From Histomonas meleagridis 2922-C6/04-290x (taxonomy: Eukaryota; Protista; Parabasalia): 64,000 nt of DNA. Both the position numbers and the translations under genes were made by a program. This document shows positions 3,514-42,432 of the stretch, piece by piece; within the stretch, counting starts at the first letter, position 1, and each line of letters starts with the position of its first letter. The notes under the pieces were generated by a model, which was not told the origin of the DNA, ran no database searches, and worked only from the letters and a program-made list of their open reading frames with translations. The stretch is taken from positions 372,001 through 436,000 of the forward strand of contig JAANOX010000083.1 in NCBI GenBank assembly GCA_020184695.1, given 5' to 3'.

Positions 3514-4545
3514 TCAATCAAGTCCAGACAAAATTTGTTGAATCAATTCCTTACATCTATTATTAATAGCTTCACTGGAACTATATTTTAGTGGGTTCAT
3601 TTTAGGGAATGAGTCCAAAATGAGCTTCATTTTATCTGGAGGAATTCGATTATTTGCTGCATAATCAAGAAAAATTAGTTGTGAAGCACATGCAACTGAT
3701 TTAAACTGTATATACTTATGTTTTTCTTGTGTAATCGGGTCATTTGAACTTGGCGGTATTTCATTTACAACATAACTTGAGGTCTGCATTAATTGTTCTA
3801 ATATCGTATCAACTGATATAGGATTCGGTAAATCAAATGTGTTCAAGCTAGACGCTGGCATAAGCTTAACGAGGTTCTGTGGAGGAACATAACATGGAGT
3901 TATGTCGGGTTGAAAGAATGAAACAAGAATGTATTCTTTGTCCATAATCTTTTTTGATCCCAAAACACGACAAACAAAAGCAGGACCATTTCCACTAGGA
4001 AGAGCTGCCAAGGACCCGAATTTTAGTTCTGATGCACTTGAACATGCTCTTGGAAGGGTTCTGTTGAGTGGTGGAAGAATAGGAATTTTTGTTTGCTGCT
4101 GTTGTTGAACAATTAATGAAAGACCCTCTGAAATTGAGCGGGAACGTGTTGGAAGTGGAGGTGGAAGTGTAGGAGCAGGTTCATTTTCTGCTTCATTTCG
4201 CGCATACTTTGCTCTAAATTTAAGAGGCATTGTTTTCATTGTTTGATAAAGTGGTGATGCTAAATTTGCCACGGATTTGGCGCTTTTCATCTGAAGAGAT
4301 CTATTATTTCTCTTGATTCGAACACCAGCAATAATAGCAACATATTGCTCATTGGCTGCCATTGCAATATCTTTAGTGGGTGTTTGAGCATCTAATAAAG
4401 AACGTTTGAATCGCCTGATAAAAGAACGAACTTGAGGAAGTGGACGAGTTGAACAATTTGAAAGTAACATGTCGTCTTTTTGCTGCTCAAGGCGAACAAT
4501 AGAACGAATGCTTTCAACCTCTTCATTGGTAAAAGGCGCAAACAT
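3514..4545 (-). CDS. Hypothetical 343-aa protein, possibly LIN-9/ALWAYS EARLY-like (N-terminal SANT-like helix bundle, central Tudor-like segment)
   Basis: ATG-initiated ORF with coding-like composition. FTNEEVESIR...RPLPQVRSFIRRFKRSLL...IAMAANEQY resembles the ALY N-terminus. ELKFGSLAAL...FVCRVLG...YILVSFFQPDITPCYVP resembles a Tudor fold. Family call is tentative. Confidence 0.7.
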   Translation of the reverse strand: MFAPFTNEEVESIRSIVRLEQQKDDMLLSNCSTRPLPQVRSFIRRFKRSLLDAQTPTKDIAMAANEQYVAIIAGVRIKRNNRSLQMKSAKSVANLASPLYQTMKTMPLKFRAKYARNEAENEPAPTLPPPLPTRSRSISEGLSLIVQQQQQTKIPILPPLNRTLPRACSSASELKFGSLAALPSGNGPAFVCRVLGSKKIMDKEYILVSFFQPDITPCYVPPQNLVKLMPASSLNTFDLPNPISVDTILEQLMQTSSYVVNEIPPSSNDPITQEKHKYIQFKSVACASQLIFLDYAANNRIPPDKMKLILDSFPKMNPLKYSSSEAINNRCKELIQQILSGLD

Positions 4546-5086
4546 GCCGAGAGTTGAATTAAAATTTAATGACTCTGTTTGGCGGGAAAAGTGACCTTAA
4601 ATAACGTTAAAAAAGTTTACAGCAAAGTGTTAAAACAAAAAATGAAAGAATACGTACCAAGAATTGACGATGTATCAACAAACCTACATCAACGAATAGT
4701 ATGTTTTATTTTATAACTTCCTTTGCTTTCTTAACTTTCTGTTCAATTGCCAGATGAAAGCTCGTTTACTGTAAACTAAAATTGTGTAGCGTAAAATGAT
4801 ATGCTTAATACATTATCGAAAATTAATTTTTATTGATTTATATTGTTAACAGATATTATTTGTATAAATATCAAATAAAAAATTTTCTTTAGAAATAAAC
4901 TTGCATTAGCGCATTAAAGTTTTAACCATATTTCGATTTAATGGATGATTGTTTTTAAAATAAGAATTTGTGCTGTGTTTTTTTATTGCTGGGTGTAAAA
5001 TCCCGTTTATTTTTCAAAAACCGGTTTCCCAATCGAACCTATTACATAAACTTCTCAAAAAACGCGGCTTCAAGACCAGATCCAAA

Positions 5087-5317
5087 ATGTCCTACCCTTT
5101 GATTTGTTTTGAGCGCACATCAATTCGAAACTCAGTTTACAGGTTTGACCCAGAAGATGTCGGCAGATCTCTTCGTCGTCCCCATTGTCCTAAATTGTTT
5201 TTCATGAAAAATAATTTTCTAAACTCAACAACAAGAAAAAATTTCGATCCAAATACTTTTGACAAACCCAAAAGCGTGATGGCAACTTCAAATTTAGACG
5301 GCTACGAATATCAATAA
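5087..5317 (+). CDS. Small hypothetical protein (76 aa, MSYPLICFERTS...GYEYQ)
   Basis: ATG at 5087 within track ORF 4970..5317; GC content is higher than the flanking intergenic DNA. No recognisable domain. Confidence 0.45.
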   Translation: MSYPLICFERTSIRNSVYRFDPEDVGRSLRRPHCPKLFFMKNNFLNSTTRKNFDPNTFDKPKSVMATSNLDGYEYQ

Positions 5318-5442
5318 TTATGTTAATATATAATTCTATATAGTTAGATTAAAAACTTATTTAATATTTACTTTGCAAGAATATTTTCCCGTAGAAGTTA
5401 TTTCAAAATAAGAATAATTCAAAAATTGAGAAAATTGTTTAA

Positions 5443-6024
5443 TTATTCATCATCCTCATGAGAATACAATGTAGAGATAACATATGACTGCCTTCTCGCA
5501 GTGTCTTCTGGTGCTTCTTTAATTTCACCTGTTTCTACTGCATTGGAAATCAAATCATTTAATTTTAATATCAAACCTTTTAGATCACTTTCAGAGGCTG
5601 TAAGATCATCACTCTTTAAACAAGATTCGGTAATTTTGAAAACTGATTTTTGAATGATTTCGATGAATGAAAGAGTTTTTTCCCCAATTTTTTGGGATCC
5701 GATTGGTGTCTGTTCGGAATTTTGAAGCGCATGTTCAATGATACCACTTGCATCTGCTGATTCACTAGCTGAAATAAGAAGTTTGGCCTTTTGTGAAAGA
5801 AGTTGTTCTTGAAGAGCTTTGCGCTTGTCTTCAACTTCAGCAAGTTCACTGCTCAATTTAGCCACTTGTGTCAGTTGTTCCCTTTGAGAATTTAATAAGC
5901 TGTTTTGAATTTGTTCCAATTTTTTTAGATAAAGATTTTCTTCTGTTACTACTTGCTCTTCCTCCCTAATTTCTTTCAAAATCGCATTGATGCTGTCCAT
6001 AGTATTTGTTTGCTTTTTGGTCAT
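5443..6024 (-). CDS. Hypothetical coiled-coil protein (193 aa)
   Basis: ATG ORF with heptad-rich E/Q/L/K N-terminal half. Confidence 0.75.
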   Translation of the reverse strand: MTKKQTNTMDSINAILKEIREEEQVVTEENLYLKKLEQIQNSLLNSQREQLTQVAKLSSELAEVEDKRKALQEQLLSQKAKLLISASESADASGIIEHALQNSEQTPIGSQKIGEKTLSFIEIIQKSVFKITESCLKSDDLTASESDLKGLILKLNDLISNAVETGEIKEAPEDTARRQSYVISTLYSHEDDE

Positions 6025-6615
6025 TTGAAAATTGCTGAAGCTGAATATTTAGGGTGGCCCAATTTCTTTTCATCAAAAAAATCATTTCTTACTTTATTCT
6101 TGATTGAAACAATGCACATTTTAAGACAGCGAAAAACAAAGCTTGAAGTGTTAAAGATTTTGGCTTTATTTAATTTGTATTTTTGAAATCATATTTTAAT
6201 ATAGTTAAATAAAAAATTAGCAAACGAATTCAACCCAATGACTTTTCATGAATTTCGATTGAGAAAGTAATTTCTCTTCGAGGTCGAAAAGAGCGTTTAA
6301 ACGAAAGTCATTTTATACGCGACCGTTTATTGCATTTTGGAAGAAAACTTTTTTGTCCAAAAAATAAATTTGACCAAGTATCAATCAAACTAATTCCTAT
6401 AGTAATGCTAACAATATTCGGTGCGCTTTGCATCTTCGCTCTTGACTAGGTCAAATTTTTCCCCATTGAAAGAATTTCTTTCTAAAGAAATGGCAGAAAT
6501 AACGAAAAAAGAAAAAAATCTAAACTGTCAAAAATTTTTTCAATTTCTTAATTCAAATTTGACTTAACGGTGATTATTTGTCGCTGAAATTTCTTTCGGA
6601 AGGCCACAATAAAAA

Positions 6616-8100
6616 ATGTTCTTTTGGAATTATCATAGCTCAAACACAATTAATGAACTTCTTAAAAAAGAAAATGTGGAACTTACTGAAATTCTTGATG
6701 AGAGCTCTCTTTCTTCTGTTTTACGAAATTCAAATCAAGAATTAATCGATTATTTTCAAAAGCCAGAAATTATAGAACAGCTCTTTGACTGGGCTCTTAC
6801 GGAAAAGTACAAGGATTGTCCAAAGGGACAAAAGTATTCGCGTTCTTCTGTCACTGTTTTTATCAATTCTCAACCATTAATGCAACAAAACTTCCTTCAA
6901 AGCGATATATTTATCGGAAGGTTAAAGAGGTATATTCAAGGTTGCGATTTAGAGCCTTTTCTTGTCGGAAATTTCCAAAGAATAATTGAAACTTATACAC
7001 GTTTAACTAATGGCACTTTTCTCGAAAAATTCCCTGAAATATTTGATTTCTTGATGAAGAACATTTCTTACTTAGGCATTTTTGAGCTTTTTATCTATTT
7101 AGTTACAGAATCCCCATTTAAAAATAGTATCACTGAGGATCTTTGGCAACAATATATAAACCTATCCAACACTGAATCTGGGTACAACATTGTTATATCC
7201 ATTCAACAAGCAATCAAAAAATGTGAAGATTTAAAGTCAATTTTCCAAACCGATGAAAATCTTCAATCATTATTAAAGACAGCTACAACCACAAACAATA
7301 AGATTCTTGCTACAGAAACATTCAATCTCATCGAAGAACTTTTCTCATCAAATCTTGATAATCCAATTATTCACGAATATGCAGCAAACTTCAAATATCA
7401 AAACGACTGTACCCTCTCATCTGCAATCCGCGTTTTCCGTGACCTCAAACCCGAAGTTATTGATTTCATATTCACATTTCCAATCAGCACTTTTGTTATC
7501 GAAGCGGTTGAAACGGTTTTTCAATCAAAAACCGTCGAAGAGCAGGCAAAGATCGTTGAAGAGAACAATATTCTTAATAGACTTATTGAGAATTCCATGA
7601 AACACAGGACTGAAGGACGTCTTGTTGATTTTGCAGAAATTATTTCAAAGATTGAAGGAATCCCAACAACAGATGTATGGAAACAATTTTGTCAAAATGA
7701 ACTTCGTAACAAGTTAACAAAACGAAACTCCAGCTATGGAGGTAGTCTTCCTTCACGTATGGGACTTTATACTGATACCGATGAAGATGAAGATGATGAC
7801 AATGACGATGATGATGAAGAATTAGCTGACTCAGACGAATTCCTTGATACCCAAATCGACATTCCTGCCTTCTCATCCGATGATAGCCTTGATCATGATT
7901 ATTCTGATGATGAAGATCATATTGGCGGTTCTCCAAAATCAGAAACAAAAGATGAAGAAAAGCCAAGTGTAGCAATACCTCTTTTAGACATACAGAACAA
8001 GGTTGACAAAACCAATTTACCGCCACCTCTAGAATCACCAAATCTACCAAATTCAACAACAGAAGAAACGAAGGACAGTGACTCAAATGACGCCCAATAG
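6616..8100 (+). CDS. SIT4/PP6 phosphatase-associated protein (SAPS family)
   Basis: N-terminus MFFW...INELLKKENVELTEILDE...NQELIDYF is typical of SAPS; helical body and long acidic C-terminal tail. Confidence 0.85.
   Translation: MFFWNYHSSNTINELLKKENVELTEILDESSLSSVLRNSNQELIDYFQKPEIIEQLFDWALTEKYKDCPKGQKYSRSSVTVFINSQPLMQQNFLQSDIFIGRLKRYIQGCDLEPFLVGNFQRIIETYTRLTNGTFLEKFPEIFDFLMKNISYLGIFELFIYLVTESPFKNSITEDLWQQYINLSNTESGYNIVISIQQAIKKCEDLKSIFQTDENLQSLLKTATTTNNKILATETFNLIEELFSSNLDNPIIHEYAANFKYQNDCTLSSAIRVFRDLKPEVIDFIFTFPISTFVIEAVETVFQSKTVEEQAKIVEENNILNRLIENSMKHRTEGRLVDFAEIISKIEGIPTTDVWKQFCQNELRNKLTKRNSSYGGSLPSRMGLYTDTDEDEDDDNDDDDEELADSDEFLDTQIDIPAFSSDDSLDHDYSDDEDHIGGSPKSETKDEEKPSVAIPLLDIQNKVDKTNLPPPLESPNLPNSTTEETKDSDSNDAQ

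Positions 8101-31322: not shown

Positions 31323-31351
<29 letters not shown>
31323..31351. repeat. (TA)n microsatellite, about 14 units
   Basis: tatatatatatatatatatatatatatat, just downstream of the 28663..31287 stop codon. Confidence 0.9.
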
Positions 31352-31353
<2 letters not shown>

Positions 31354-31465: not shown

Positions 31466-32233
31466 ATGAATACATTTACAGTATTGCTAAAGAATGGCAT
31501 TTTTAACCCCATATCTTATTTCATATTTTCAGCCAATAATAATGTTGTCAAATGATATATAAAAAGCTACGATACCACTTTGAAAGAAGGGATGAATATT
31601 GATTATATAAATTTTTCATTTTTTGGTTTAATGCTAATTTTAATATTTTAATACTCATTCATATTTTTTGGAATTAATCTTTATAATTTGGTATTACACT
31701 AATTAAAGCAGCCCAAATAGGTCTTATAGATGAAGTAACAAACAATAATATTACTTTATATTTTATAAAATATAATATATATATACATTATTTGGAAATT
31801 ATTTAAATTAAATAAAACATCGCTTATGATTGCTTCTGAAAACCATCATGTAGGAATAATTAAATTACTTCGTGAACAAAAAGGAATTAGTGTTAATGCT
31901 AAAAATATTTATTTGGTTTATTTAATATTGTTTTTATTTTTTAATACTTAATAATATTTTTTGGAATTTGCCTCTATAATTTGCTATTGGACTTGTTAAA
32001 TCAGCACAAATGGGTCTTATAGATGAAGTAAGACAACTTCTTGGACAAGAAGGAATTGATGTTAATGTTAAAGATATTTATTGGTTTTATTTCATATTTA
32101 TTTTTATAATTTGCTATTTCAAAATAATATTTGGAAATTATTTGTTCTATTTCAAACAGCGCTTATGATTGCTTCTGGAAAAGGTAATATTCAAATAGTT
32201 AAATTACTTCGCATGAAGAATTCAGTCTTATAA
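31466..32233 (+). pseudogene. Ankyrin-repeat relic with spacer-interrupted repeats
   Basis: Modules 31813-31914 (KTSLMIASENHHVGIIKLLREQKGISVNAKNIY) and 31982-32083 (AIGLVKSAQMGLIDEVRQLLGQEGIDVNVKDIY), each 102 nt. Spacers at 31621-31688, 31915-31981 and 32084-32151. One repeat is partly deleted and there is an in-frame TGA near 31553. Confidence 0.8.
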
Positions 32234-32954: not shown

Positions 32955-33897
32955 TTTCTCCCTTTCTATTTTAGGAATTATGAATCTATCGAAATACGTT
33001 AAATTTCTTATCTAGTCACTTTTAATATAAATCTAATATATTATTCCTATTCAATTAAACGATTGTCAATTTCAAAAAAAAAACAATTTTTCAATGTCAT
33101 TCAAAACAATCATCAGGTGACTTCACAGATGAACAATCGCTATGCTCAATGACGAAGTTTAAAAAAGATAGCCACCAATGCTTCATTAAAATACATGAAC
33201 AAGAGAGGTATAAGAACGGGACACCCTAAGTTCCATATTCCTGCTCAGTTTATCATATGAAGGTTCTGAAGGTATTGATATCAACTAGATTCCAATGGCA
33301 ATTTATATAAAAATTAAATTTTTAAACCACCAAAAAGAAGTAGAAAATCAAAAGCTATAAAACATCAAATTAAAGGTTCTACTATATCACAATTGTCAAA
33401 TAATGAAACAACAGAAGAACCAAAGTTTATTGATTTCAAAGTCCATGGATATTTTTACTTAAATCCTCTACATAACTTCATTTCTTATAATCAAATATCC
33501 GATGAAAATCTCTCAATGGATGATGGCACTTATCAATTTGATAACTTTTATGAGAATGGCTCATTCTAATGTGGGAATGGTCTATAAACTGAATAAAAAA
33601 GAATCCTTATTTAAAAAAATTAATAAAAATACTTTTATATTAAAAATACTAAAGAGTTAGTAACGTGTAAACAAAATTTGTTAATAATACAATCATTTTA
33701 ATGCGAGAAAAAAAATATTTTTCCATTCAAGGCTAATTCATATATCAAATTTATTGTTTTCGAAGTTGTTAATTGAGAAATTACTTTATTAATTTAACGT
33801 TGACCCAATATCAAATGTTTAATTAAGTGTGTGAATCGATTCCTCTCATATGCGTATAAGTTGTACAACTCGGACTTACCACGGGACACTAAAATGA

Positions 33898-34041: not shown

Positions 34042-37017
34042 TTAACTTAATGTTGTTATGCTCGGCTGTCTTGCTGCCTCAGTTTCGCACAGCAACGACA
34101 GAAAGCACAGCGCCACCTGTCTCATTTTTACGAACGAGTCCAACTTTGTAATTTCCGAGTTTCCCATCATTGTGTTTAAGTTCAAGTCGAAGTTAAACAC
34201 CGACACAGGAACTCTTTCCAACGCTGCCGCGAATATTCTTCCGTTTTGCCAAGCCATTTTTGCTCTAAAGTTTTGATCCTTTTGCGCGGAGAACGGCAAC
34301 GAGTGGAATGTGGAGTCCACGTGATTACTTAGTTTCTCGACGAACAAATCGCATTTATTGGGCAACAACGAATTCGACGGCAAATCCCACACGATTTCAT
34401 TTGTTAAGTAATCATCGAAGAACTCGAACTTCGGCGGCTCATTATGGAACATGTTATTCCAAATGTGAGGATAATACGTGACGATGTCATGAATCACAGG
34501 CACGTTCATTAACAATGGTATATAATCACTTCGAATCATTCCATTTATTAACTTTTCGAAGTCAATAAATTTACAATTCGATGGCTTATACAAGATAAAC
34601 ACATCAGCATTATATTGGAAATATGTGTCTTCACTTACATATATTATATTCGTATTACTTTCATCATATCCGATATAATTTAATAGTTGATAAATCTCAT
34701 CAACCATGATATTATCTTCAGGTGATATTAAATATATACATATTAAACTTGGCGGTGAACTAATTAAATTATAATAATTAGTTGGTCGTGGTGATAATAA
34801 CATTTGCCATTCATTATATATATTAAACGTCTTACCCAGTTTCAATAGTTTATCCAAAACTGTGTCATTTTCGATTTCAAATTGGAAATCGTAATGTTTT
34901 GGTATCTTGTTTACTAATGTAAATGCACGGAATGATATATGAGGGAAACAAATGTTTTGTAAATGTAATGTTTTCTTATCTAACGCGTCACATTTTAATG
35001 AATAATATAATAATATATCTTCGTTAGATATGAAAAGAGGTTTTAATCTTGAACATATGAAATCTTTAAAAGGAATAACATGAATAAGTAATTCCAAATC
35101 TTTAATGTTTAATGAGTTTATCATTAATCGTGACATTTCAGCTATACTTTTCTTTAGTTTCATAATTTCTTTATTATTCTCATTACTTTTATAATCAGAT
35201 TTATCATATATTTGTAACACAATATTAAAATTATTCTCATTAATTGGTAATAACATTTTCGGATATGAAAATGGTATAAAAAACTTTCGAATTAATGCTA
35301 CATATTCATTCATTAAAAAAACATTCGTTTTACATTTCTTTCTTAAAAATGATAACCCTTTTTCTGATAATTTTAATTCTCGTTTGTTTTGTAACTTAAA
35401 TAACATATTATCAATCTTTACGTTTTGAAGTTTATTCTTTTGTTCACTAATTAATGGAATTACATTCGGATCTTTAATATTAAAGAGAATATCAAGTATT
35501 AAAAATATTCGATGTGGTCGTTTTTGATGATTAACTTTCGTAGATGGCAAACGTAAATATCGTTGGATTATATTAACGTCGATATTTGTTTTATTATACA
35601 TTATCCAATGATAAAATATCGAATCAACTTCTTTACAATTCTCTCGCATTTTACGATCACAAATACTTTGTTTATTATTGTTGTTAGTTATTCGAAAATT
35701 CGGATATGGCTGAGTGATTAAACTAAACGCTTCTTCTAAATATTTCCATGATAAATAATTTAAATCTTTGTTACGTTGTGAAATAGCTAATTGCCATTTT
35801 TGTAAATCATCTGAACATTTTATTTGTAAAATTATGGTACTAATGATCGCTATGTTTTTATCACTTTCTGCTAATGGTAACATATAACTTAATAATGCTC
35901 CATCACATTTCTCAAATGATATTAATGAATTATTAATAATATATTTATATAATGTCATCTTATCATTATAATTATGACATTTAATAAACAAATAAATAAG
36001 TTCTTTAATCGAATCTTCATTAAGTTTGGTATTAATGTTGTTTAAAAACCATATAATGTCGCTGACTGATATTAATGATAATGGTTCAACTTTTGTGAGT
36101 TTGAATTGTGATAAAAATGGGGTGATCCGTTCGCGGCCGTTTAAATCAGGGAAAAAAGTGGAATAAATCCAATAGATAAATGCAGAATTAGGATCTTCGA
36201 TATGTAAAAGAAGTAGGATATCTTGAATGGGTTGATGATACTCTGGATTTGAATTAAATTTGGGCGCAATGAAATATAACCAATTAATTATGGATTGCGG
36301 ATCATGTGGTGGATTTGATCTTTGAAGAAGAGATAGAACAACAGGCGCCATTTCAATACCACGAAATAATTGTGAGGGAATGGAGTCAATTGATGCTGAA
36401 AGTAAATCTAAAAGATCATTTTCAAATTGATCAAAATGAATATTAACTGACCTCATTAATGATATATGTGAAAGAACAGTAATAGATTGTGATAGTTGAA
36501 ATTGTTTTAATATATCTTCAACTTTACTTGCAAGAATATCAAGATGTAAACGACGTGAAATGAAATACATTGGTAAACATATAGAACTTGTGACAGTGGC
36601 AGGAATTACAGGAGAGCTTGTAATACGCTTGTTATTTTTGTGCTGTGGGTTTAAATATTTTTGAATCTGTATTATGGCATTTTTCCATGGGATATCAACA
36701 AAAGGAAGAATAATTTTGATTTCGGCTGGTTCATTGTCAGTAGAAATTATCTTAGGAATTTTATATCGAGGATGAGATACTTCGTTATTAAATGCATCAA
36801 CTGGAACAGTCATTTCATAAAAAGTATCATTTTCATCATATACAAAATCTACAATTACCATTTCACAATTTGGTTCCAATGAAAAATTTAATGTTTGTTT
36901 GGAAGCATATATTTCAAATGAATCCCTTGATGCCATTAAAAACCCAAAAGGAAAGGCGATATGAATAAAGTATTCATTTGTATAAATCATACAAAATTGA
37001 ATTAAGACGATTATCAT
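34042..37017 (-). CDS. Hypothetical 991-aa protein, paralog of 28663..31287
   Basis: Long intact ORF. YWIYSTFFPDL, FFDDYLTNEIVWD...LLP, FHSLPF, GRIFAAAL and VFNFDL align with the partner gene. Confidence 0.85.
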   Translation of the reverse strand: MIIVLIQFCMIYTNEYFIHIAFPFGFLMASRDSFEIYASKQTLNFSLEPNCEMVIVDFVYDENDTFYEMTVPVDAFNNEVSHPRYKIPKIISTDNEPAEIKIILPFVDIPWKNAIIQIQKYLNPQHKNNKRITSSPVIPATVTSSICLPMYFISRRLHLDILASKVEDILKQFQLSQSITVLSHISLMRSVNIHFDQFENDLLDLLSASIDSIPSQLFRGIEMAPVVLSLLQRSNPPHDPQSIINWLYFIAPKFNSNPEYHQPIQDILLLLHIEDPNSAFIYWIYSTFFPDLNGRERITPFLSQFKLTKVEPLSLISVSDIIWFLNNINTKLNEDSIKELIYLFIKCHNYNDKMTLYKYIINNSLISFEKCDGALLSYMLPLAESDKNIAIISTIILQIKCSDDLQKWQLAISQRNKDLNYLSWKYLEEAFSLITQPYPNFRITNNNNKQSICDRKMRENCKEVDSIFYHWIMYNKTNIDVNIIQRYLRLPSTKVNHQKRPHRIFLILDILFNIKDPNVIPLISEQKNKLQNVKIDNMLFKLQNKRELKLSEKGLSFLRKKCKTNVFLMNEYVALIRKFFIPFSYPKMLLPINENNFNIVLQIYDKSDYKSNENNKEIMKLKKSIAEMSRLMINSLNIKDLELLIHVIPFKDFICSRLKPLFISNEDILLYYSLKCDALDKKTLHLQNICFPHISFRAFTLVNKIPKHYDFQFEIENDTVLDKLLKLGKTFNIYNEWQMLLSPRPTNYYNLISSPPSLICIYLISPEDNIMVDEIYQLLNYIGYDESNTNIIYVSEDTYFQYNADVFILYKPSNCKFIDFEKLINGMIRSDYIPLLMNVPVIHDIVTYYPHIWNNMFHNEPPKFEFFDDYLTNEIVWDLPSNSLLPNKCDLFVEKLSNHVDSTFHSLPFSAQKDQNFRAKMAWQNGRIFAAALERVPVSVFNFDLNLNTMMGNSEITKLDSFVKMRQVALCFLSLLCETEAARQPSITTLS

Positions 37018-37043
37018 GAAAAACGTTATTTTGATTTAGCTAA

Positions 37044-38300
37044 ATGTTTGGTAAACCAGGGGCTTCTGTTGCTTCAAAAATGGATATGCTTGGTTACCAT
37101 AATGAAGCTAATGAATATTTAAAATTATTAGGCTTGCCTAAAGAAACAAAAGAAATTCCTACGTTAATGGTTAAAGGCCCAGAAACAAAAGAAGATATTT
37201 CAAAACATCCATTCCTAAATTATTTTTTACAAAAGCGTTTATTTAAATTTCGTTCTTCTGTTTTAAATGATCATGATCTTGGTACAATTAAAGCTGAAGT
37301 CATACGTGAAGATTCTGAAACTAAACCAATTACAGAAATACGATTTAAAAAACTTGCAGATCAAATTGGTCCAGCAAAATCCCATGTTTTTTCGCCTAAA
37401 ATATTAAAAAGATTTATCACAACAGACAAACAATTCAAATTTATTGATTATCTTCAATTCCTTCAAGCTTATAGTAGAGTTCAAAAAGCCTTTTTATTTA
37501 TGCTTCGAACAAATCCCACTATTGATAATTCGATGAGTGAAACTAATCTTCAAGAATTCATTTCTTCTTACATTAAAACAGTCAATACCCTTAAGCGTCT
37601 TGAAGGTGATCTCTCATGGTATAAAGAATTCTATATTCCAACAGTTATGAGTCGATTTAATTTTTATTTATTATCAAATAACGGTCGCTATGATATCCAA
37701 CAACTTCTTACCTCCAATTGTTTTATTGATTTTATATCCATTGATCAACAGTCACCTGATGAAAATTCCTTTTCACTTAAACAAACCATTTCCCTATATA
37801 ATTATTTTATTAAACTTGATACTGAAGAAGAAGGTTTGCTATCGATCAACAGTATGATCAAAATCGATTCAATGGAGTTCACAACCGTTTTCGTCGAACG
37901 TTTATTTGACACCCTCCAAACGTTTGATGGGAAACTTGACTTTACATTATTTTTACATGTTTTAATGAATTTAAGGAATATGGATGATAAACATTGTATA
38001 CCATTTTTCTTTAATATCATTGATGTTGATGAGGATGGAATAATTACAAGATTTGATATCAATTATTTTTATAAATCAATGATAAAAGACACCGAATTAA
38101 AAGGTCATGACTATGATAGTTTTTTCTCGAAATTATTAGATATAGCAGGTTGTACTTCTGAAGATATAACAAAAGAAAAATTATTACAATCTGGTGGATT
38201 TACATTGTTCTTTAAGTTGTTGATTGACATGAACACTTTTAAAGAAATGGAAGATGATGAAGAACAATTCGAAGGAGAAGAAGAAAAGGACGAAAACTAA
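37044..38300 (+). CDS. PP2A regulatory subunit B'' (PR72/PPP2R3-like, EF-hand)
   Basis: FIKLDTEEEGLLS, FVERLF, GKLDF..F and FFFNIIDVDEDGIIT..DINYFY are typical of B'' subunits. Confidence 0.85.
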   Translation: MFGKPGASVASKMDMLGYHNEANEYLKLLGLPKETKEIPTLMVKGPETKEDISKHPFLNYFLQKRLFKFRSSVLNDHDLGTIKAEVIREDSETKPITEIRFKKLADQIGPAKSHVFSPKILKRFITTDKQFKFIDYLQFLQAYSRVQKAFLFMLRTNPTIDNSMSETNLQEFISSYIKTVNTLKRLEGDLSWYKEFYIPTVMSRFNFYLLSNNGRYDIQQLLTSNCFIDFISIDQQSPDENSFSLKQTISLYNYFIKLDTEEEGLLSINSMIKIDSMEFTTVFVERLFDTLQTFDGKLDFTLFLHVLMNLRNMDDKHCIPFFFNIIDVDEDGIITRFDINYFYKSMIKDTELKGHDYDSFFSKLLDIAGCTSEDITKEKLLQSGGFTLFFKLLIDMNTFKEMEDDEEQFEGEEEKDEN

Positions 38301-38434
38301 AGTTTATTGTAATAAATATATGTTTTACTATTTTTATATGATCAAAATCAAAAGCAATTATAAATAATGCTTCAAATAATATAAAAAAAACCAAATATTA
38401 TTTAAAATTATTAAATTGTGATATTAAATTTCAA

Positions 38435-40060
38435 TTATAAAATGATATAATTAAATATTTTAAGTGTTGGTATTAATACTTTTTTGTTCAAGAGTAACTT
38501 AACTATATCTATATAATTTTTTTGCGTTGCAATCATAAGTGCTGTATTAAATAATTTAAATAATCTCCAAATATTATATTAAAATATAAAATTATTAAAA
38601 TAAATTTTAAATAAAACAAATCATTATTTTTAGCATTAATATCAATTCCATTTTGTTCAAGAAGTAACTTAACTATATCTATATGACAATTTCTAGATGC
38701 TTCCATAAGTGCTGTATTAAATAATTTAAATAATTTCCAAATATTGTTTTGAAATATCCCAAATATATCAAAACAAAAGTTAAACAAAACCAATAAATCC
38801 TTTTGGCATTAATATCAATTCCTTCTTGTTCAAGAAGTAATTTAACTATTTCTGTATGACCTTTTGAAGTTGCTAATGTAAGAGCTGTTTCAAATTATTT
38901 AAATAATTTCCAAACATTATTTTACAATGCTAAATAATTTAAATAAATTTCATATAAAACTAAAGGATATCTTTAGCATTAATATTAATTCTTTTTTGTT
39001 CAAGAAGTAACTTAACGATTTCTATGTGACCTTTTTCAGATGCTTCAATAAGTGCTGTTTTATATAATTTAAATAAACTTTAAATATTTTTTTGCGATAT
39101 ATAATTATCAAAATGAATTTTACATGAAATTTATTGATATATTTAGCATTGATATCAATTCTTTTTTGTTCAATAAGCAATTTAATCACATTGATTTTTC
39201 CTTTTTCAACTGCATTCATGAAAAATGTTTTAAATAATTTAAATAATTTTCAACAAATACAACGAAACATTAAAATGATAAAACAAATTTTTAATATATA
39301 ATTTAAATATTTGCATTTACGTCAAATTCTTTTTGTTGTATCATGTATTTAACGAGTTCATAATTTTTTGATTCAAGTATTTTATCAAATATATCTTCTG
39401 AAAAATTAAACTTCTTATAAAAATGTTTAAAAACATATAGGTTACCATATTTTATTGGATAATTAACAACAGATTCATCAAATTTAAACTCTTCTTCTAA
39501 AAATGAAAATATTTCATAATTACAATTGAGAATACAGAGACGTAATAAATCATAATGATTTAAACACCCTAGTTTATTTTCATCTAACTTTTCCAATTTG
39601 TTTTCATAAATATATTTAAAGATATCATTTCAATGAAATTTAATTGCAGTAATATATGCACCTTCAAATGATGCATGATTTTGCTCACATAAATAAATGA
39701 TTTCTTCATTCCCACCTGCAACTGCATATCGACCAGTTTTTACCATATTAGCACCATTAAGAAATAAATATTTATTACATTTAACTGATCCAAAAAATGC
39801 TGCATAATCAATTAATGTTACAAATGAAAAATTAATATATGTACATCTTTCATAAAGAGATGGTTCAATCGTTCGATTGAAATAAAAATATTTTTCTGTG
39901 GATACAAACTCTTGAAGTTTTTCAATATCATCATTTCTAATGATTTTAGTAATTTCTGATGGATTACATCCTCCTTTAATTAATTTCTTATGAAGTGCCC
40001 AATCATCCATTGAAAGTTCATCAAAATTTTCTAATAAATTTCAAATGGGTCAATTGTATC
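38435..40060 (-). pseudogene. DUF3447/ankyrin-repeat gene with every ankyrin repeat separated by a 68-71-nt spacer; appears disabled
   Basis: DUF3447-type region (FFGSVKCNKYL, AVAGGNEEII, AIKFH*ND) has one in-frame TGA at 39630. Four 102-nt ankyrin modules follow (39131-39232, 38961-39062, 38791-38892, 38618-38719), then a final frameshifted module. A 1-nt frameshift lies near 40035. Confidence 0.85.
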
Positions 40061-40383
40061 ATAACTCAAGTTTTCTCTTTCAACTTTTTGTTGACGATGG
40101 ACAAAATAGTATGATGAAATGTCTTCACAAAATAAAGTGACATGTCACTTACCGTTATTCATTTTTACAAAAAAAGTAACTGTTCATCAATTCTAAAGTA
40201 AAAATGAAAGTTATAATTAATTCATTGAGTTACATATAAAGTTATAAATAGAAAAAACAAACAAAAACAATAGAAAAAAAAAATCATTAATTAATACAAA
40301 ACATCCGAAAAAAAAATAGTTCAAACAACAAAAAATAATTTTTTCAGTTAATTTATGTTAAATGTTTATTATATATATAATTT

Positions 40384-42366
40384 TTATTCTGTGATTTCTG
40401 AGAAGAAAGCGATGTACGCAGCTTGACTTTCTTTTGTCAGATCGCATTTTGTCACTTTTGCATCATTGAATGCGAACCAATTTCCATTTCTTTTTGCCAT
40501 AGCAGTATAATGCCCAGAGTTCAGGCTGCCCGTGTGATTAATGACTCCCACCAATTCATACTTATGCCTTTTTCCATCCTTATTTAAGAAGAATTCTGAC
40601 AGATCGATTTCATTGTCCAAAACTATTTTCGAATTATCTCTTTCGTATGTTTTACCCAACGAAAATCTTTTGAAGTGCAAAATCAAATTTTTTGGTAATT
40701 TCAACAAATTAATTTTATGTATTGCACAAGTTTCGTTAAAACATTTTTCACATTTCCATTTGTTATCGATATCTAATTGTATTTCATTGAAGTATGAATC
40801 GATTAATTCCTCGATTGAAATCGGGTTCGAGATTGCCACTTTTCGTATACTTTTGAATCCGTATTTCAGATCGCCATAAGGTTCGTTGATGCTTACAACC
40901 AAATGTTCATTGCACATATATTTATTATTCACACCATCATTCATTAATGTAAACATTTTCGGCGGATCAACAATTTTAAAGCTTTTGATTGACTTTTTTC
41001 TCCATTCTTTTTCGAATAACATTTCGATTCGATTCCACACAATGATTTCTAAGTCATATGTACTTTGTTCTGTGTTTAATGGAACTCTAACTAACAATGG
41101 CTCACATATCTTTCGGTCTTTAGACTGAAGCCATAGTATTGTAAGTCCCAAATTTTCTTCCTCGTCAAAATGCGGTGGAATTTCTAACGCTAAAACTTCG
41201 ACAAATTCATATGTAAATGATGTCGTTAACTTTGTCTCTAAGTTTCGCGTTTTACCTAATAAGATAACAGGTAATGGCGGAATAGAGTTCATGCGTTGCA
41301 TTTGCTCATCTAAGTTCCACGGTGAAAATATTATTCGACGTGAAGAAGCAATTGGTAATGAGATCGATGAAAATGTTTCGTTAATTTCGGTCGAATGATG
41401 ACAATTGGAACATGTCGTTTTGGACGCGCTCTCGCCATAAAATAAAGGATTGATAAGTTCTGAGTTTTCTTCGTGAAGTTTGTCAATAAAAAATGATAAA
41501 AATTCGTGGGAATCATGTTGCGTCTTATCACCAAAAAATGGAACTAATGTAATAAATGAACGGCGGAGTTGTGTTGGATCAAAGACGGAATCATCAGTTT
41601 GCGTTATGGATTTGTAAAATTGGATAAATGAAGTGATGAGAAATTTATTTGGAAATTGAGAAAGTGAGGTGATAAAATGTGGAAGAGAAATAAGACACTG
41701 AAGTGAAGCATTCATGTAACATGTGTTCCCTAGGTTTTTAAGACCCGGATAAGGTGATGATTTTTTGGTAATAAATTTTTTATCTTTCTTGGGATTGGAT
41801 CGTGGCTTAGATGGTTGCTTAGGTGGTGGCGGTGGCTTCTTGTGTTGGGTGGTTACTGTAATAACAGAAGAATTAGTAAGTTTTGGAGTGATATATCCGG
41901 TATCTTCGATTTTGTTCTTATCTAATGATAAAACAATTTCATTCTCTTCTGGTATAGAAAACAGTTGTCTTAAATAATCAGTTAATTGCGTAAATGTTGA
42001 ATATTTTGATAAATTGAGTTTTTTGGTTGTATTTTGGAAATTAACAAGTATGTCGATAGAATACAATTTAGAGTTCCCCAAACAATCAAAGTTACACTTT
42101 ATTTCCATACCACTTCCAAATTCCATTAGAAGATCCTCCCATTCTTCTTTAGGAACAACAAAATAGTCTATATTAGGTTTTAAGTTTGGCTTTAACCTAC
42201 TTTTATTTTTCAAATCTTTATTGTTAATTTCAAGAATAGGAATATTATCTTTAGATGAAGATTCTAATTCCTTCACAAAAGATGCAGAAATTAAATAACC
42301 AGTATCTTTTTCTGTATACTTTCTTGTTTCAATTGTTTGAATTAGTTGATCATATATACTTTTCAT
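40384..42366 (-). CDS. Ubiquitin-specific protease (C19, USP4/11/15-like with DUSP-like and UBL-like N-terminus)
   Basis: GLKNLGNTCYMNASLQCL Cys box, QHDSHEF, HTGSLNSGHYTA His box, WFAFND. Confidence 0.93.
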   Translation of the reverse strand: MKSIYDQLIQTIETRKYTEKDTGYLISASFVKELESSSKDNIPILEINNKDLKNKSRLKPNLKPNIDYFVVPKEEWEDLLMEFGSGMEIKCNFDCLGNSKLYSIDILVNFQNTTKKLNLSKYSTFTQLTDYLRQLFSIPEENEIVLSLDKNKIEDTGYITPKLTNSSVITVTTQHKKPPPPPKQPSKPRSNPKKDKKFITKKSSPYPGLKNLGNTCYMNASLQCLISLPHFITSLSQFPNKFLITSFIQFYKSITQTDDSVFDPTQLRRSFITLVPFFGDKTQHDSHEFLSFFIDKLHEENSELINPLFYGESASKTTCSNCHHSTEINETFSSISLPIASSRRIIFSPWNLDEQMQRMNSIPPLPVILLGKTRNLETKLTTSFTYEFVEVLALEIPPHFDEEENLGLTILWLQSKDRKICEPLLVRVPLNTEQSTYDLEIIVWNRIEMLFEKEWRKKSIKSFKIVDPPKMFTLMNDGVNNKYMCNEHLVVSINEPYGDLKYGFKSIRKVAISNPISIEELIDSYFNEIQLDIDNKWKCEKCFNETCAIHKINLLKLPKNLILHFKRFSLGKTYERDNSKIVLDNEIDLSEFFLNKDGKRHKYELVGVINHTGSLNSGHYTAMAKRNGNWFAFNDAKVTKCDLTKESQAAYIAFFSEITE

Positions 42367-42432
42367 GGAAATTTAGGAATGAACTGTTGTATTATGCCAC
42401 CAAAAATTGAATGGAAATTTATAACTTAAAAA

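Follow-up and report, generated by a model that had tools for sequence, protein, structure and literature searches.

We analysed a 64,000-nucleotide (nt) stretch of the Histomonas meleagridis 2922-C6/04-290x genome (contig JAANOX010000083.1, positions 372,001 to 436,000, hereafter the window), which carries on its minus strand what is probably a transcribed ankyrin-repeat gene of the DUF3447/ankyrin family, with loop tips encoded as single codons set among 17-nt pieces that are removed. What looks like one frame-breaking spacer in each ankyrin hairpin is, with high confidence, a series of four 17-nt pieces alternating with 3-nt exons, with a period of 20 nt and every piece in phase 0. Found in the DNA, the pieces are missing, singly or in sets, from contigs of RNA runs, and they are therefore introns by operational definition. 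The evidence consists of the 17+3 anatomy itself, of RNA-run contigs that lack the pieces and of the restoration of the reading frame in an intact relative.

The minus-strand array is a tandem repeat with a 170-nt unit (38452-39185, 4.3 copies, 75% matches, as detected by Tandem Repeats Finder). A preliminary description, made from the sequence alone, had recognized four modules of 102 nt (39131-39232, 38961-39062, 38791-38892 and 38618-38719) separated by spacers of 68, 68, 71 and 68 nt (39063-39130, 38893-38960, 38720-38790 and 38550-38617). Modules and spacers lie on the minus strand at these coordinates, and the spacers contain stops and break the reading frame, as it had also proposed. 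The conserved 3' part of the spacers, ATTATTTAAATTATTTAATACAG, is found five times when at most three mismatches are allowed, against zero occurrences expected. Homologous pieces of different repeats are 62-83% identical and modules 67-87%, the pieces being as conserved as the modules, and the most variable columns between repeats are the single codons. Differences between modules are distributed as 85/45/86 over the three codon positions, a weak sign of constraint at the protein level.

A unit smaller than the spacer was suspected from the lengths involved, 17, 34 and 68 nt, the last being 4 x 17. Among 12 hairpin gaps, nine of which measure exactly 83 nt, a length of 17 is the only one that permits a decomposition into four pieces and five codons. 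Only registers 2 and 3 yield glycine at loop position 4 (6/9) together with aspartate, asparagine or serine at position 1, registers 0, 1, 4, 5 and 6 giving hydrophobic nonsense loops, and the RNA endpoints described below pick register 3. Canonical ankyrin hairpins are restored only with 17-nt pieces in one register, as in INAKDESGETAL and INAKNKYGNTAL. A decoder that sought the fewest excisions merely evaded stops by means of 13-23-nt cuts, and was dropped as uninformative.

The gene begins at 40010 with an open reading frame (ORF) of 126 amino acids (aa), ORF1 (39633..40010), which encodes the family's N-terminal domain, and continues in the same frame, after a single TGA (39630..39632), with a 97-aa ORF (ORF2) that holds a second N-terminal part (39309..39629) ending ...EFDVNAN and matching Pfam DUF3447 weakly, under the cut-off. 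The first junction, J0 (39232..39308), is parsed in 20-nt steps into pieces at 39292-39308, 39272-39288, 39252-39268 and 39232-39248, with single-codon exons AAA (39289-39291), AAT (39269-39271) and GAA (39249-39251) between them, so that it reads AAT-17-AAA-17-AAT-17-GAA-17-AAA ACA. Long exon 1 (39139..39231), matched by Pfam Ank_3/Ank, comprises ankyrin module 1 and the first loop codon, TAT, of the following junction, J1 (39062..39138), whose pieces (39122-39138, 39102-39118, 39082-39098 and 39062-39078) are separated by the codons AAA (39119-39121), TAT (39099-39101) and AAA (39079-39081). Long exon 2 (38969..39061; module 2 with loop codon GAT) leads into J2 (38892..38968), with pieces at 38952-38968, 38932-38948, 38912-38928 and 38892-38908 and codons GAA (38949-38951), AGC (38929-38931) and GGA (38909-38911); its parse, GAT-17-GAA-17-AGC-17-GGA-17-GAA ACA, yields INAKDESGETAL and was supported by the register test.

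Long exon 3 (38799..38891; module 3 with loop codon AGG) is followed by an irregular junction, J3 (38719..38798), in which alignment shows a 3-nt TGG insertion. Its likely parse has pieces at 38782-38798, 38762-38778 (starting TTTT), 38739-38755 and 38719-38735, the exons between them being the codon AAC (38779-38781), the 6-nt TGGGAT (38756-38761) and the codon GGA (38736-38738). Long exon 4 (38626..38718; module 4 with loop codon AAT) precedes J4 (38549..38625), which reads INAKNKYGNTAL by the parse and the register test, with pieces at 38609-38625, 38589-38605, 38569-38585 and 38549-38565 and codons AAA (38606-38608), TAT (38586-38588) and GGA (38566-38568). Long exon 5 (38457..38548), a decayed fifth module reading NTALMIATQKNYIDIVKLLLNKKVLIPTLK and covered by RNA contigs, is followed by 17-nt piece A, ATTTAATTATATCATTT (38440..38456), a 10-nt exon (38430..38439) and 17-nt piece B, ATTTAATATCACAATTT (38413..38429). 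The last codons and TAA of the processed message would lie at 38398..38412 (stop at 38398-38400), and the modelled mRNA would end ...IIIENNFK.

The RNA data consist of contigs of four RNA-labelled runs (X1-X4) placed on positions 37000-42400. In the intergenic bin 40077-40257 the depth is 0.06 in X3 and 3.07 in X4, compared with 26-36 over the neighbouring UCH gene, a collapse of more than 10-fold, by which these runs behave as RNA and not as DNA. One 447-nt contig (X2 record 13) joins 39308-39613 to 39138-39231 with 0 mismatches and 8 letters between the two blocks, skipping 39232-39307, and runs for 39 further letters past 39138. At the 3' end of the gene, contigs that are otherwise identical occur as a colinear form of 1481 nt (X1), a form of 1464 nt with 17 letters left out at 38440 (X3) and a form of 1447 nt with 10 letters in place of 38413-38456, a net loss of 34 (X2 and X4). 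Piece A is missing from the X3 contig and from the 34-nt-shorter form, with a register ambiguity of 1 nt; piece B is missing from X2 and X4; and the 10 letters between blocks in X2 record 9 and X4 record 23 correspond to the 10-nt exon. Many paralogue contigs, at very high depth, align to the exons only and carry intact loops between them (NAKNNRGNTAL, NAKDVYGNTAL).

Alternative models were compared by simulating the maximal colinear extension of each predicted mRNA against the genome. The 17+3 model gives J0 endpoints of 39308/39231 with 8 letters between, a stop at 39138 in J1, which was predicted blind, and 3'-end endpoints of 38457/38412 with 10 letters between, in each case exactly as observed. 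The long 3'-side contigs all end at 38548, the predicted exon edge at J4. A register slid by -1 predicts 39310/39232 and 9 letters at J0, which is not observed.

Several points weigh against this reading of the RNA. An unspliced J2 contig is present (X1 record 6, 38862-38998), and no locus-specific spliced contig for J2-J4 was found among the four runs. A 121-nt contig (X1 record 2, X3 record 17) matches 38638-38726, continues with 32 unlike letters and misfits the J3 parse, its match reaching 8 nt deeper than predicted into the last J3 piece; it could stem from a cut at another site, from the skipping of an exon or from a paralogue of nearly the same sequence. The RNA nature of the runs is a guessed label ("RNA?"), and the contigs are assembled and were read via their alignment endpoints, as was the junction of X2 record 13. 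The DNA evidence is that of assemblies and of DNA samples, which leaves heterogeneity at the DNA level in the RNA-sequenced strain as a formal possibility.

Two further observations concern the 3' end. A 17-mer homologous to the last piece of a junction, TTTTTTTTATATTATTT (38374-38390, minus strand), begins with T and is retained in contigs of all four runs; its retention is what would be expected if removal required a purine at position 1, although the 17-mer may lie past the stop codon. The convergent neighbouring gene (37044-38300, plus strand) shares RNA contigs (37068-38548) with the 3' end of the ankyrin gene, the two transcripts overlapping or abutting, and this overlap may be the reason why the dominant 3'-end form differs between runs.

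The same architecture is found at independent loci. In the window, a second ankyrin fragment (31560..32230, plus strand) contains a junction, Jc, with pieces at 32076-32092, 32096-32112, 32116-32132 and 32136-32152 and codons CAT, GCT and GGA, so that GAT-17-CAT-17-GCT-17-GGA-17-CAA ACA reads NVKDHAGQTAL; in another junction of this fragment, Jb (31904-31982), one piece is 16 nt long, its T-run being one base shorter. The fragment ends LLRMKNSVL before a stop and is probably a gene relic. Elsewhere in this part of the window, an (AT)n microsatellite of about 27 nt (31326-31352, plus strand) lies directly downstream of an 874-aa ORF.

The intact relative lies in a second assembly (locus L002, positions 4001-7614, from GCA_020186115.1, WSYJ01000186.1, a contig of 3,384,422 base pairs), where each of four hairpin gaps of 83 nt holds four 17-mers. 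Once the 16 x 17 nt are taken out, a single frame of 1113 codons runs from a 506-aa ORF through four ankyrin repeats and on through a 505-aa ORF. The corresponding NCBI model, KAH0793109.1 (506 aa, Histomonas meleagridis, 'caskin', recovered as relative P0009 of ORF1), ends at the first 17-mer, and the annotation makes the 505-aa ORF on the 3' side a gene of its own. Many other relatives have predicted proteins that end just within the first hairpin (...IDINAQNI, ...ININAKDI, ...IDINVKDI). Models of this type stop at the first hairpin (506 aa against 1113 codons), which means that a large family of an important poultry pathogen is mis-annotated; the H. meleagridis ankyrin family appears to be affected systematically. 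The pattern recurs on a metagenome scaffold (L001), with the reading DNSGRTAL, and the pieces are kept in all genome copies examined, in two assemblies and metagenomes. The junctions of one further locus (L004) gave no clean parse and were not used. Protein searches for transcript-derived proteins returned no matches with ORF2 and none with the C-terminal ORF of L002, the latter search being swamped by low-complexity words, and clustering of the relatives at 90% revealed no longer members.

Loci of Tritrichomonas foetus (GCA_001839685.2), for which the evidence is that of sequence, provide a possible counterpart. TRFO_38306 (L003:4650-5120) contains seven pieces of 25, 19, 19, 17, 19, 18 and 19 nt, all starting with GT and ending in YAT, some of them separated by the single codons GGT, CGA and TCT. 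Without the seven pieces its ORF grows from 553 to 706 aa and takes in four additional repeats, among whose loops are YKTSTGLTALH and NARMRSGKTPLH. A second locus (L008:4230-5140) is full of GTTT...YAT units of 18-21 nt, and a third (L007), whose junctions gave no clean parse, was not used. Pieces related to those of Histomonas, of GT...YAT form and 17-25 nt long, appear to occur in the ankyrin hairpins of T. foetus, which suggests a lineage-wide tritrichomonad feature.

Membership of the gene in the DUF3447/ankyrin family follows from the homology of ORF1, which has 2199 relatives at E<=1e-3 (best E=1e-44, 66% identity); its best matches are 'caskin' gene models of H. meleagridis, and the relatives also include DUF3447 proteins of T. 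foetus. The G+C content of the window is 29.5%, and the standard code gives long unbroken ORFs. Long exons 2-4 score 29.6-34.4 bits against Pfam Ank (PF00023; cut-off 21.1), with E-values of 7e-7, 5.5e-8 and 2.2e-8, and exon 1 is weaker. The matches of exons 2-4 begin at profile position 3 or 4 and end at position 31 of 33 (4-31 for exon 2, 3-31 for exon 4), so that the only codons absent from the long exons are those of the hairpin tip, positions 32, 33, 1 and 2. Three of these are supplied by the single-codon exons, and each long exon contributes the remaining one as its final codon.

The preliminary description had noted that this copy carries disabling lesions, and the in-frame TGA at 39630-39632 bears this out: relatives have glutamine or arginine at this place (FH[QR]ND), where the present copy has a stop between FH and ND. 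In J1 the loop has degenerated (YKYKK), J3 contains a 3-nt insertion and a second piece beginning with T, and the last module is decayed. Probably the copy is a young pseudogene whose transcription and processing continue. A 17-nt piece at 39618-39634 would remove the TGA and has the right length, but its removal breaks the frame, and paralogue contigs are colinear there.

We pooled 49 pieces to describe their termini and composition. Position 1 is a purine in 48/49 pieces (A in 36, G in 12); T occupies positions 2, 3 and 4 in 40, 45 and 42 of the 49 and positions 15, 16 and 17 in 47, 45 and 46; and A is found at position 5 in 32, at position 11 in 34 and at position 14 in 38. The first dinucleotide is AT in 29 pieces, GT in 10 and AA in six, the last is TT in 42, and overall composition is 60% T and 31% A, giving the consensus R-U-U-U-A...A-U-U-U.

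These termini were compared with those of established intron classes. GT..AG pieces number 0/49, AT..AC pieces, as sought for U12-type introns, 0/49, and pieces ending in AG 0/49; a U2-type 5' GT is present in 10/49, the RNA supports for pieces A and B the register ATTT..ATTT or one displaced by a single nucleotide, never ending in AG, and the trichomonad ACTAAC motif is absent from all 49. An apparent U12 signal, ATATCCTT at 38962-38969, spans the GAT codon and the first J2 piece, is lacking at the other junctions and was dismissed as coincidence. Rescue of the whole spacer as a GT-AG intron (GT...ACAG, 76/79 nt) shifts the following module out of its frame, where it runs into stops. Folding of the five junction regions gave energies no better than those of shuffled sequences (z = +0.42, -1.42, +0.35, +0.19 and -1.87) and no shared structure; neither a bulge-helix-bulge nor twin stem-loops were predicted at the cut sites, Rfam returned no match, and end pairing of the euglenid type was not found, the termini RUUU and AUUU being non-complementary and without a stable fold.

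The preliminary description was thus essentially right in proposing a non-canonical intron, and right in stating that GT-AG ends and the trichomonad ACTAAC motif are absent; intervening sequence is, as it had inferred, missing from transcripts. Its unit and its junctions have to be replaced: the unit is the 17-nt piece, four per hairpin, with single-codon exons between, and the GTTTT(A/G)T taken for the intron start lies within the first 17-nt piece.

In the mechanism that we propose, the pieces would be taken out of the RNA individually, in keeping with the coexistence of forms that have lost 0, 1 or 2 of them, and their removal would leave an mRNA with canonical D-x-x-G-x-T-A-L hairpins. The 170-nt array would have arisen by duplication of a repeat unit that already held four pieces, and this copy would later have acquired a nonsense codon and some degenerate loops while transcription and processing persisted. 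The reaction may be of spliceosome type and intron-defined, reading a 5' RUUU, with the 3' cut set by distance and the U-tract and without an AG; cutting by distance would resemble what happens in other lineages with fixed-length minimal introns. Such a divergent spliceosome-type route is our working guess, to which we give about an even chance, with half as much weight on a non-spliceosomal RNA route and the rest falling on DNA-level or artefactual explanations and on further routes. The 5' purine-T, the U-richness, a length range as narrow as that of minimal introns and the independent, stepwise removal speak for it. Against a spliceosomal route count the lack of a 3' AG in all 49 pieces, A instead of G at position 1 in 36/49, the position of the conserved A just 4 nt from the 3' end and the 3-nt length of the exons. 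In addition, the canonical signal seems to be present in this genome, the window containing a 24-nt candidate conventional intron of the form GT..ACTAAC..AG, GTTTACACGTTACTAACTCTTTAG (33661-33684, minus strand), in an intergenic or small-gene region.

The broader proposition, somewhat short of an even chance in our estimate, is that of a previously undescribed system of RNA excision, be it independent of the spliceosome or a spliceosome that needs no 3' AG, which would remove fixed 17-nt RUUUA...AUUU elements, thereby make arrays of single-codon exons possible, be pervasive in Histomonas ankyrin genes and take a GT...YAT form of 17-25 nt in Tritrichomonas.

Among the alternatives, the one that survives best retains the same anatomy and makes the removal non-spliceosomal: an endonuclease measuring sequence and length would make one cut ahead of the first AUUU and another behind the last, and the exons would be sealed by an RNA ligase of RtcB or Trl1 type, much as in the splicing of tRNA introns or of HAC1/XBP1. 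We regard this as unlikely, yet as a serious competitor. The lack of AG or AC 3' ends, the A that mostly occupies position 1, and the length strictly fixed at 17 nt in Histomonas all suit it; 3-nt exons are presumably hard to fit with spliceosome footprints; and pieces A and B are removed even in a decayed, possibly non-coding tail, by which recognition looks autonomous. On the other hand, a bulge-helix-bulge, a shared stable fold and an Rfam match are all missing, no enzyme candidate was found, and the 5' purine-T, together with the GT starts of the T. foetus pieces (7/7), resembles a degenerate 5' splice site.

It is improbable, at a considerably lower level, that the RNA is never cut and that the pieces are instead absent from some DNA, through programmed excision, allelic indels or intron-less paralogues and retrocopies. 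This explanation draws on the lack of a DNA run compared at the locus, on contigs that are strandless and drop rare variants, on the occurrence of mainly one 3'-end form per RNA run and on the highly multicopy nature of the family. The pieces are, however, present in the assembly and in two DNA samples, which contain 0.75 and 0.64 of the words sampled, and they are kept by all genome copies in two assemblies and metagenomes. The shortened forms continue without a mismatch into 1.3 kilobases of the unique neighbouring gene and into 306 nt of unique sequence upstream, and the three forms differ by exactly 17 nt within a single clonal background that is otherwise identical over 5.4 kilobases.

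Slightly less probable still is that the locus is a dead pseudogene fragment, duplicated in tandem in the manner of a satellite and not processed at all, the joints being the product of paralogue cross-mapping. The 170-nt tandem array, the nonsense codon, the degenerate J1 and the irregular J3 would be expected of such a relic, and most RNA joints do come from paralogues with short matching sides, but X2 record 13 and the 3'-end contigs are locus-specific over hundreds to 1338 nt at 0 mismatches, and the same architecture preserves a 1113-codon ORF in the intact gene.

The weakest explanations can be dealt with briefly. Removal of a single non-canonical intron of 68-71 nt per repeat, between NAKxxx-x and xTAL, as first proposed, restores the frame between modules, but is very improbable: the RNA match stops at 39138 and not at 39131, no single 68-nt excision reproduces the J0 endpoints, where 8 letters are kept, forms shorter by 17 and 34 nt exist, and the supposedly clean repeats have glycine at the hairpin tip in 0/9 cases and in-frame stops in two relatives (L002 and L001), the block containing three retained single codons, including the glycine codon of TTTGGA. 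Translational bypassing or frameshifting, in which the ribosome would hop the AU-rich, fixed-length gaps in unprocessed mRNA, is just as improbable: the absence of the pieces from RNA contigs disfavours both this route, named as an alternative in the preliminary description, and an untranscribed relic, and 16 consecutive 17-nt hops with single-codon landings in one gene (L002) have no known precedent.

If confirmed with raw reads, the 17-nt pieces of H. meleagridis would constitute an intron class outside current rules, without AG, mostly with A first, fixed at 17 nt and up to four in a row around 3-nt exons. The class would make the minimal size of exons and introns, and the minimal definition of a 3' splice site, testable. 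With the target-binding codons of the hairpin tip in exons of their own, the cell might, if this reading is true, skip some of them and so change the length or sequence of a loop.

In the full-text literature we found no description of 17-nt non-GT-AG introns or of arrays of single-codon exons; coverage was incomplete, and an earlier description is possible. Introns in H. meleagridis have been reported as scarce, with at most one per gene (PMC8529796), and in the 2026 T. foetus assembly the predicted introns are regarded as not yet validated.

Comparison with known systems places the pieces between several of them. Ciliate internal eliminated sequences (IESs) are removed from DNA and are TA-bounded, and bypass elements (T4 gene 60, the 'byps' of Magnusiomyces mitochondria) stay in the mRNA. 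The pieces are, like both, short, AT-rich, frame-breaking inserts that have to be ignored for expression, but they are present in DNA (in this assembly, in other assemblies and in the two DNA samples), have no TA-TA boundaries and are absent from RNA contigs, where a bypassed gap would be kept in the mature mRNA. The introns of tRNAs, with their bulge-helix-bulge (BHB), and the IRE1-dependent introns of HAC1 and XBP1 (26 nt in XBP1) need a BHB or paired stem-loops; they share with the pieces a short length, the lack of GT-AG and a possible removal by endonuclease and ligase, tRNA introns falling in a similar size range, whereas the required folds are not predicted around the 17-nt pieces. Euglenid non-conventional introns are longer, variable in length and defined by pairing near both ends. 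They resemble the pieces in belonging to nuclear pre-mRNA, in lacking GT-AG and in existing alongside conventional introns; the pieces differ in their fixed length and in showing neither pairing nor a stable fold.

Minimal introns are 15-16 nt long in Stentor and other heterotrich ciliates, and those of heterotrichs and of Mikrocytos have canonical spliceosomal termini, ordinary exons and a distribution over many gene types. The minimal spliceosomal introns of Mikrocytos mackini measure 16-17 nt (PMC10245619). The pieces share with these introns the size class, the very narrow length range, the removal from RNA and the conservation along the whole length; in contrast, 0/49 are GT..AG, most start with A and end with U, four stand in a row with 3-nt exons, and they are so far confined to ankyrin hairpins. 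The 3-nt microexons of animals and plants are rare and isolated, are flanked by long GT-AG introns and need exon-definition enhancers (PMC7392893, PMC8831610, PMC8632122). The single codons of the Histomonas hairpins likewise keep the frame and are of a kind routinely overlooked by annotation and aligners, but they occur three in a row and 17 nt apart.

The spliceosomal introns of Trichomonas vaginalis and T. stableri are GT/AG introns of 23-28 nt (type B) or 56-196 nt (type A), with a 12-nt 3' motif in which the ACTAA branch site is fused to the AG, and with one or few per gene (PMC12316389). The pipeline used in that work drops junctions without canonical motifs (PMC12316389), and a 17-nt class could therefore not have been seen by it. 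The pieces described here differ in having no AG and no ACTAAC and in numbering 16 in a single gene; they come from the same phylum and, like the introns of the trichomonads, are short, U-rich and begin with a purine followed by T.

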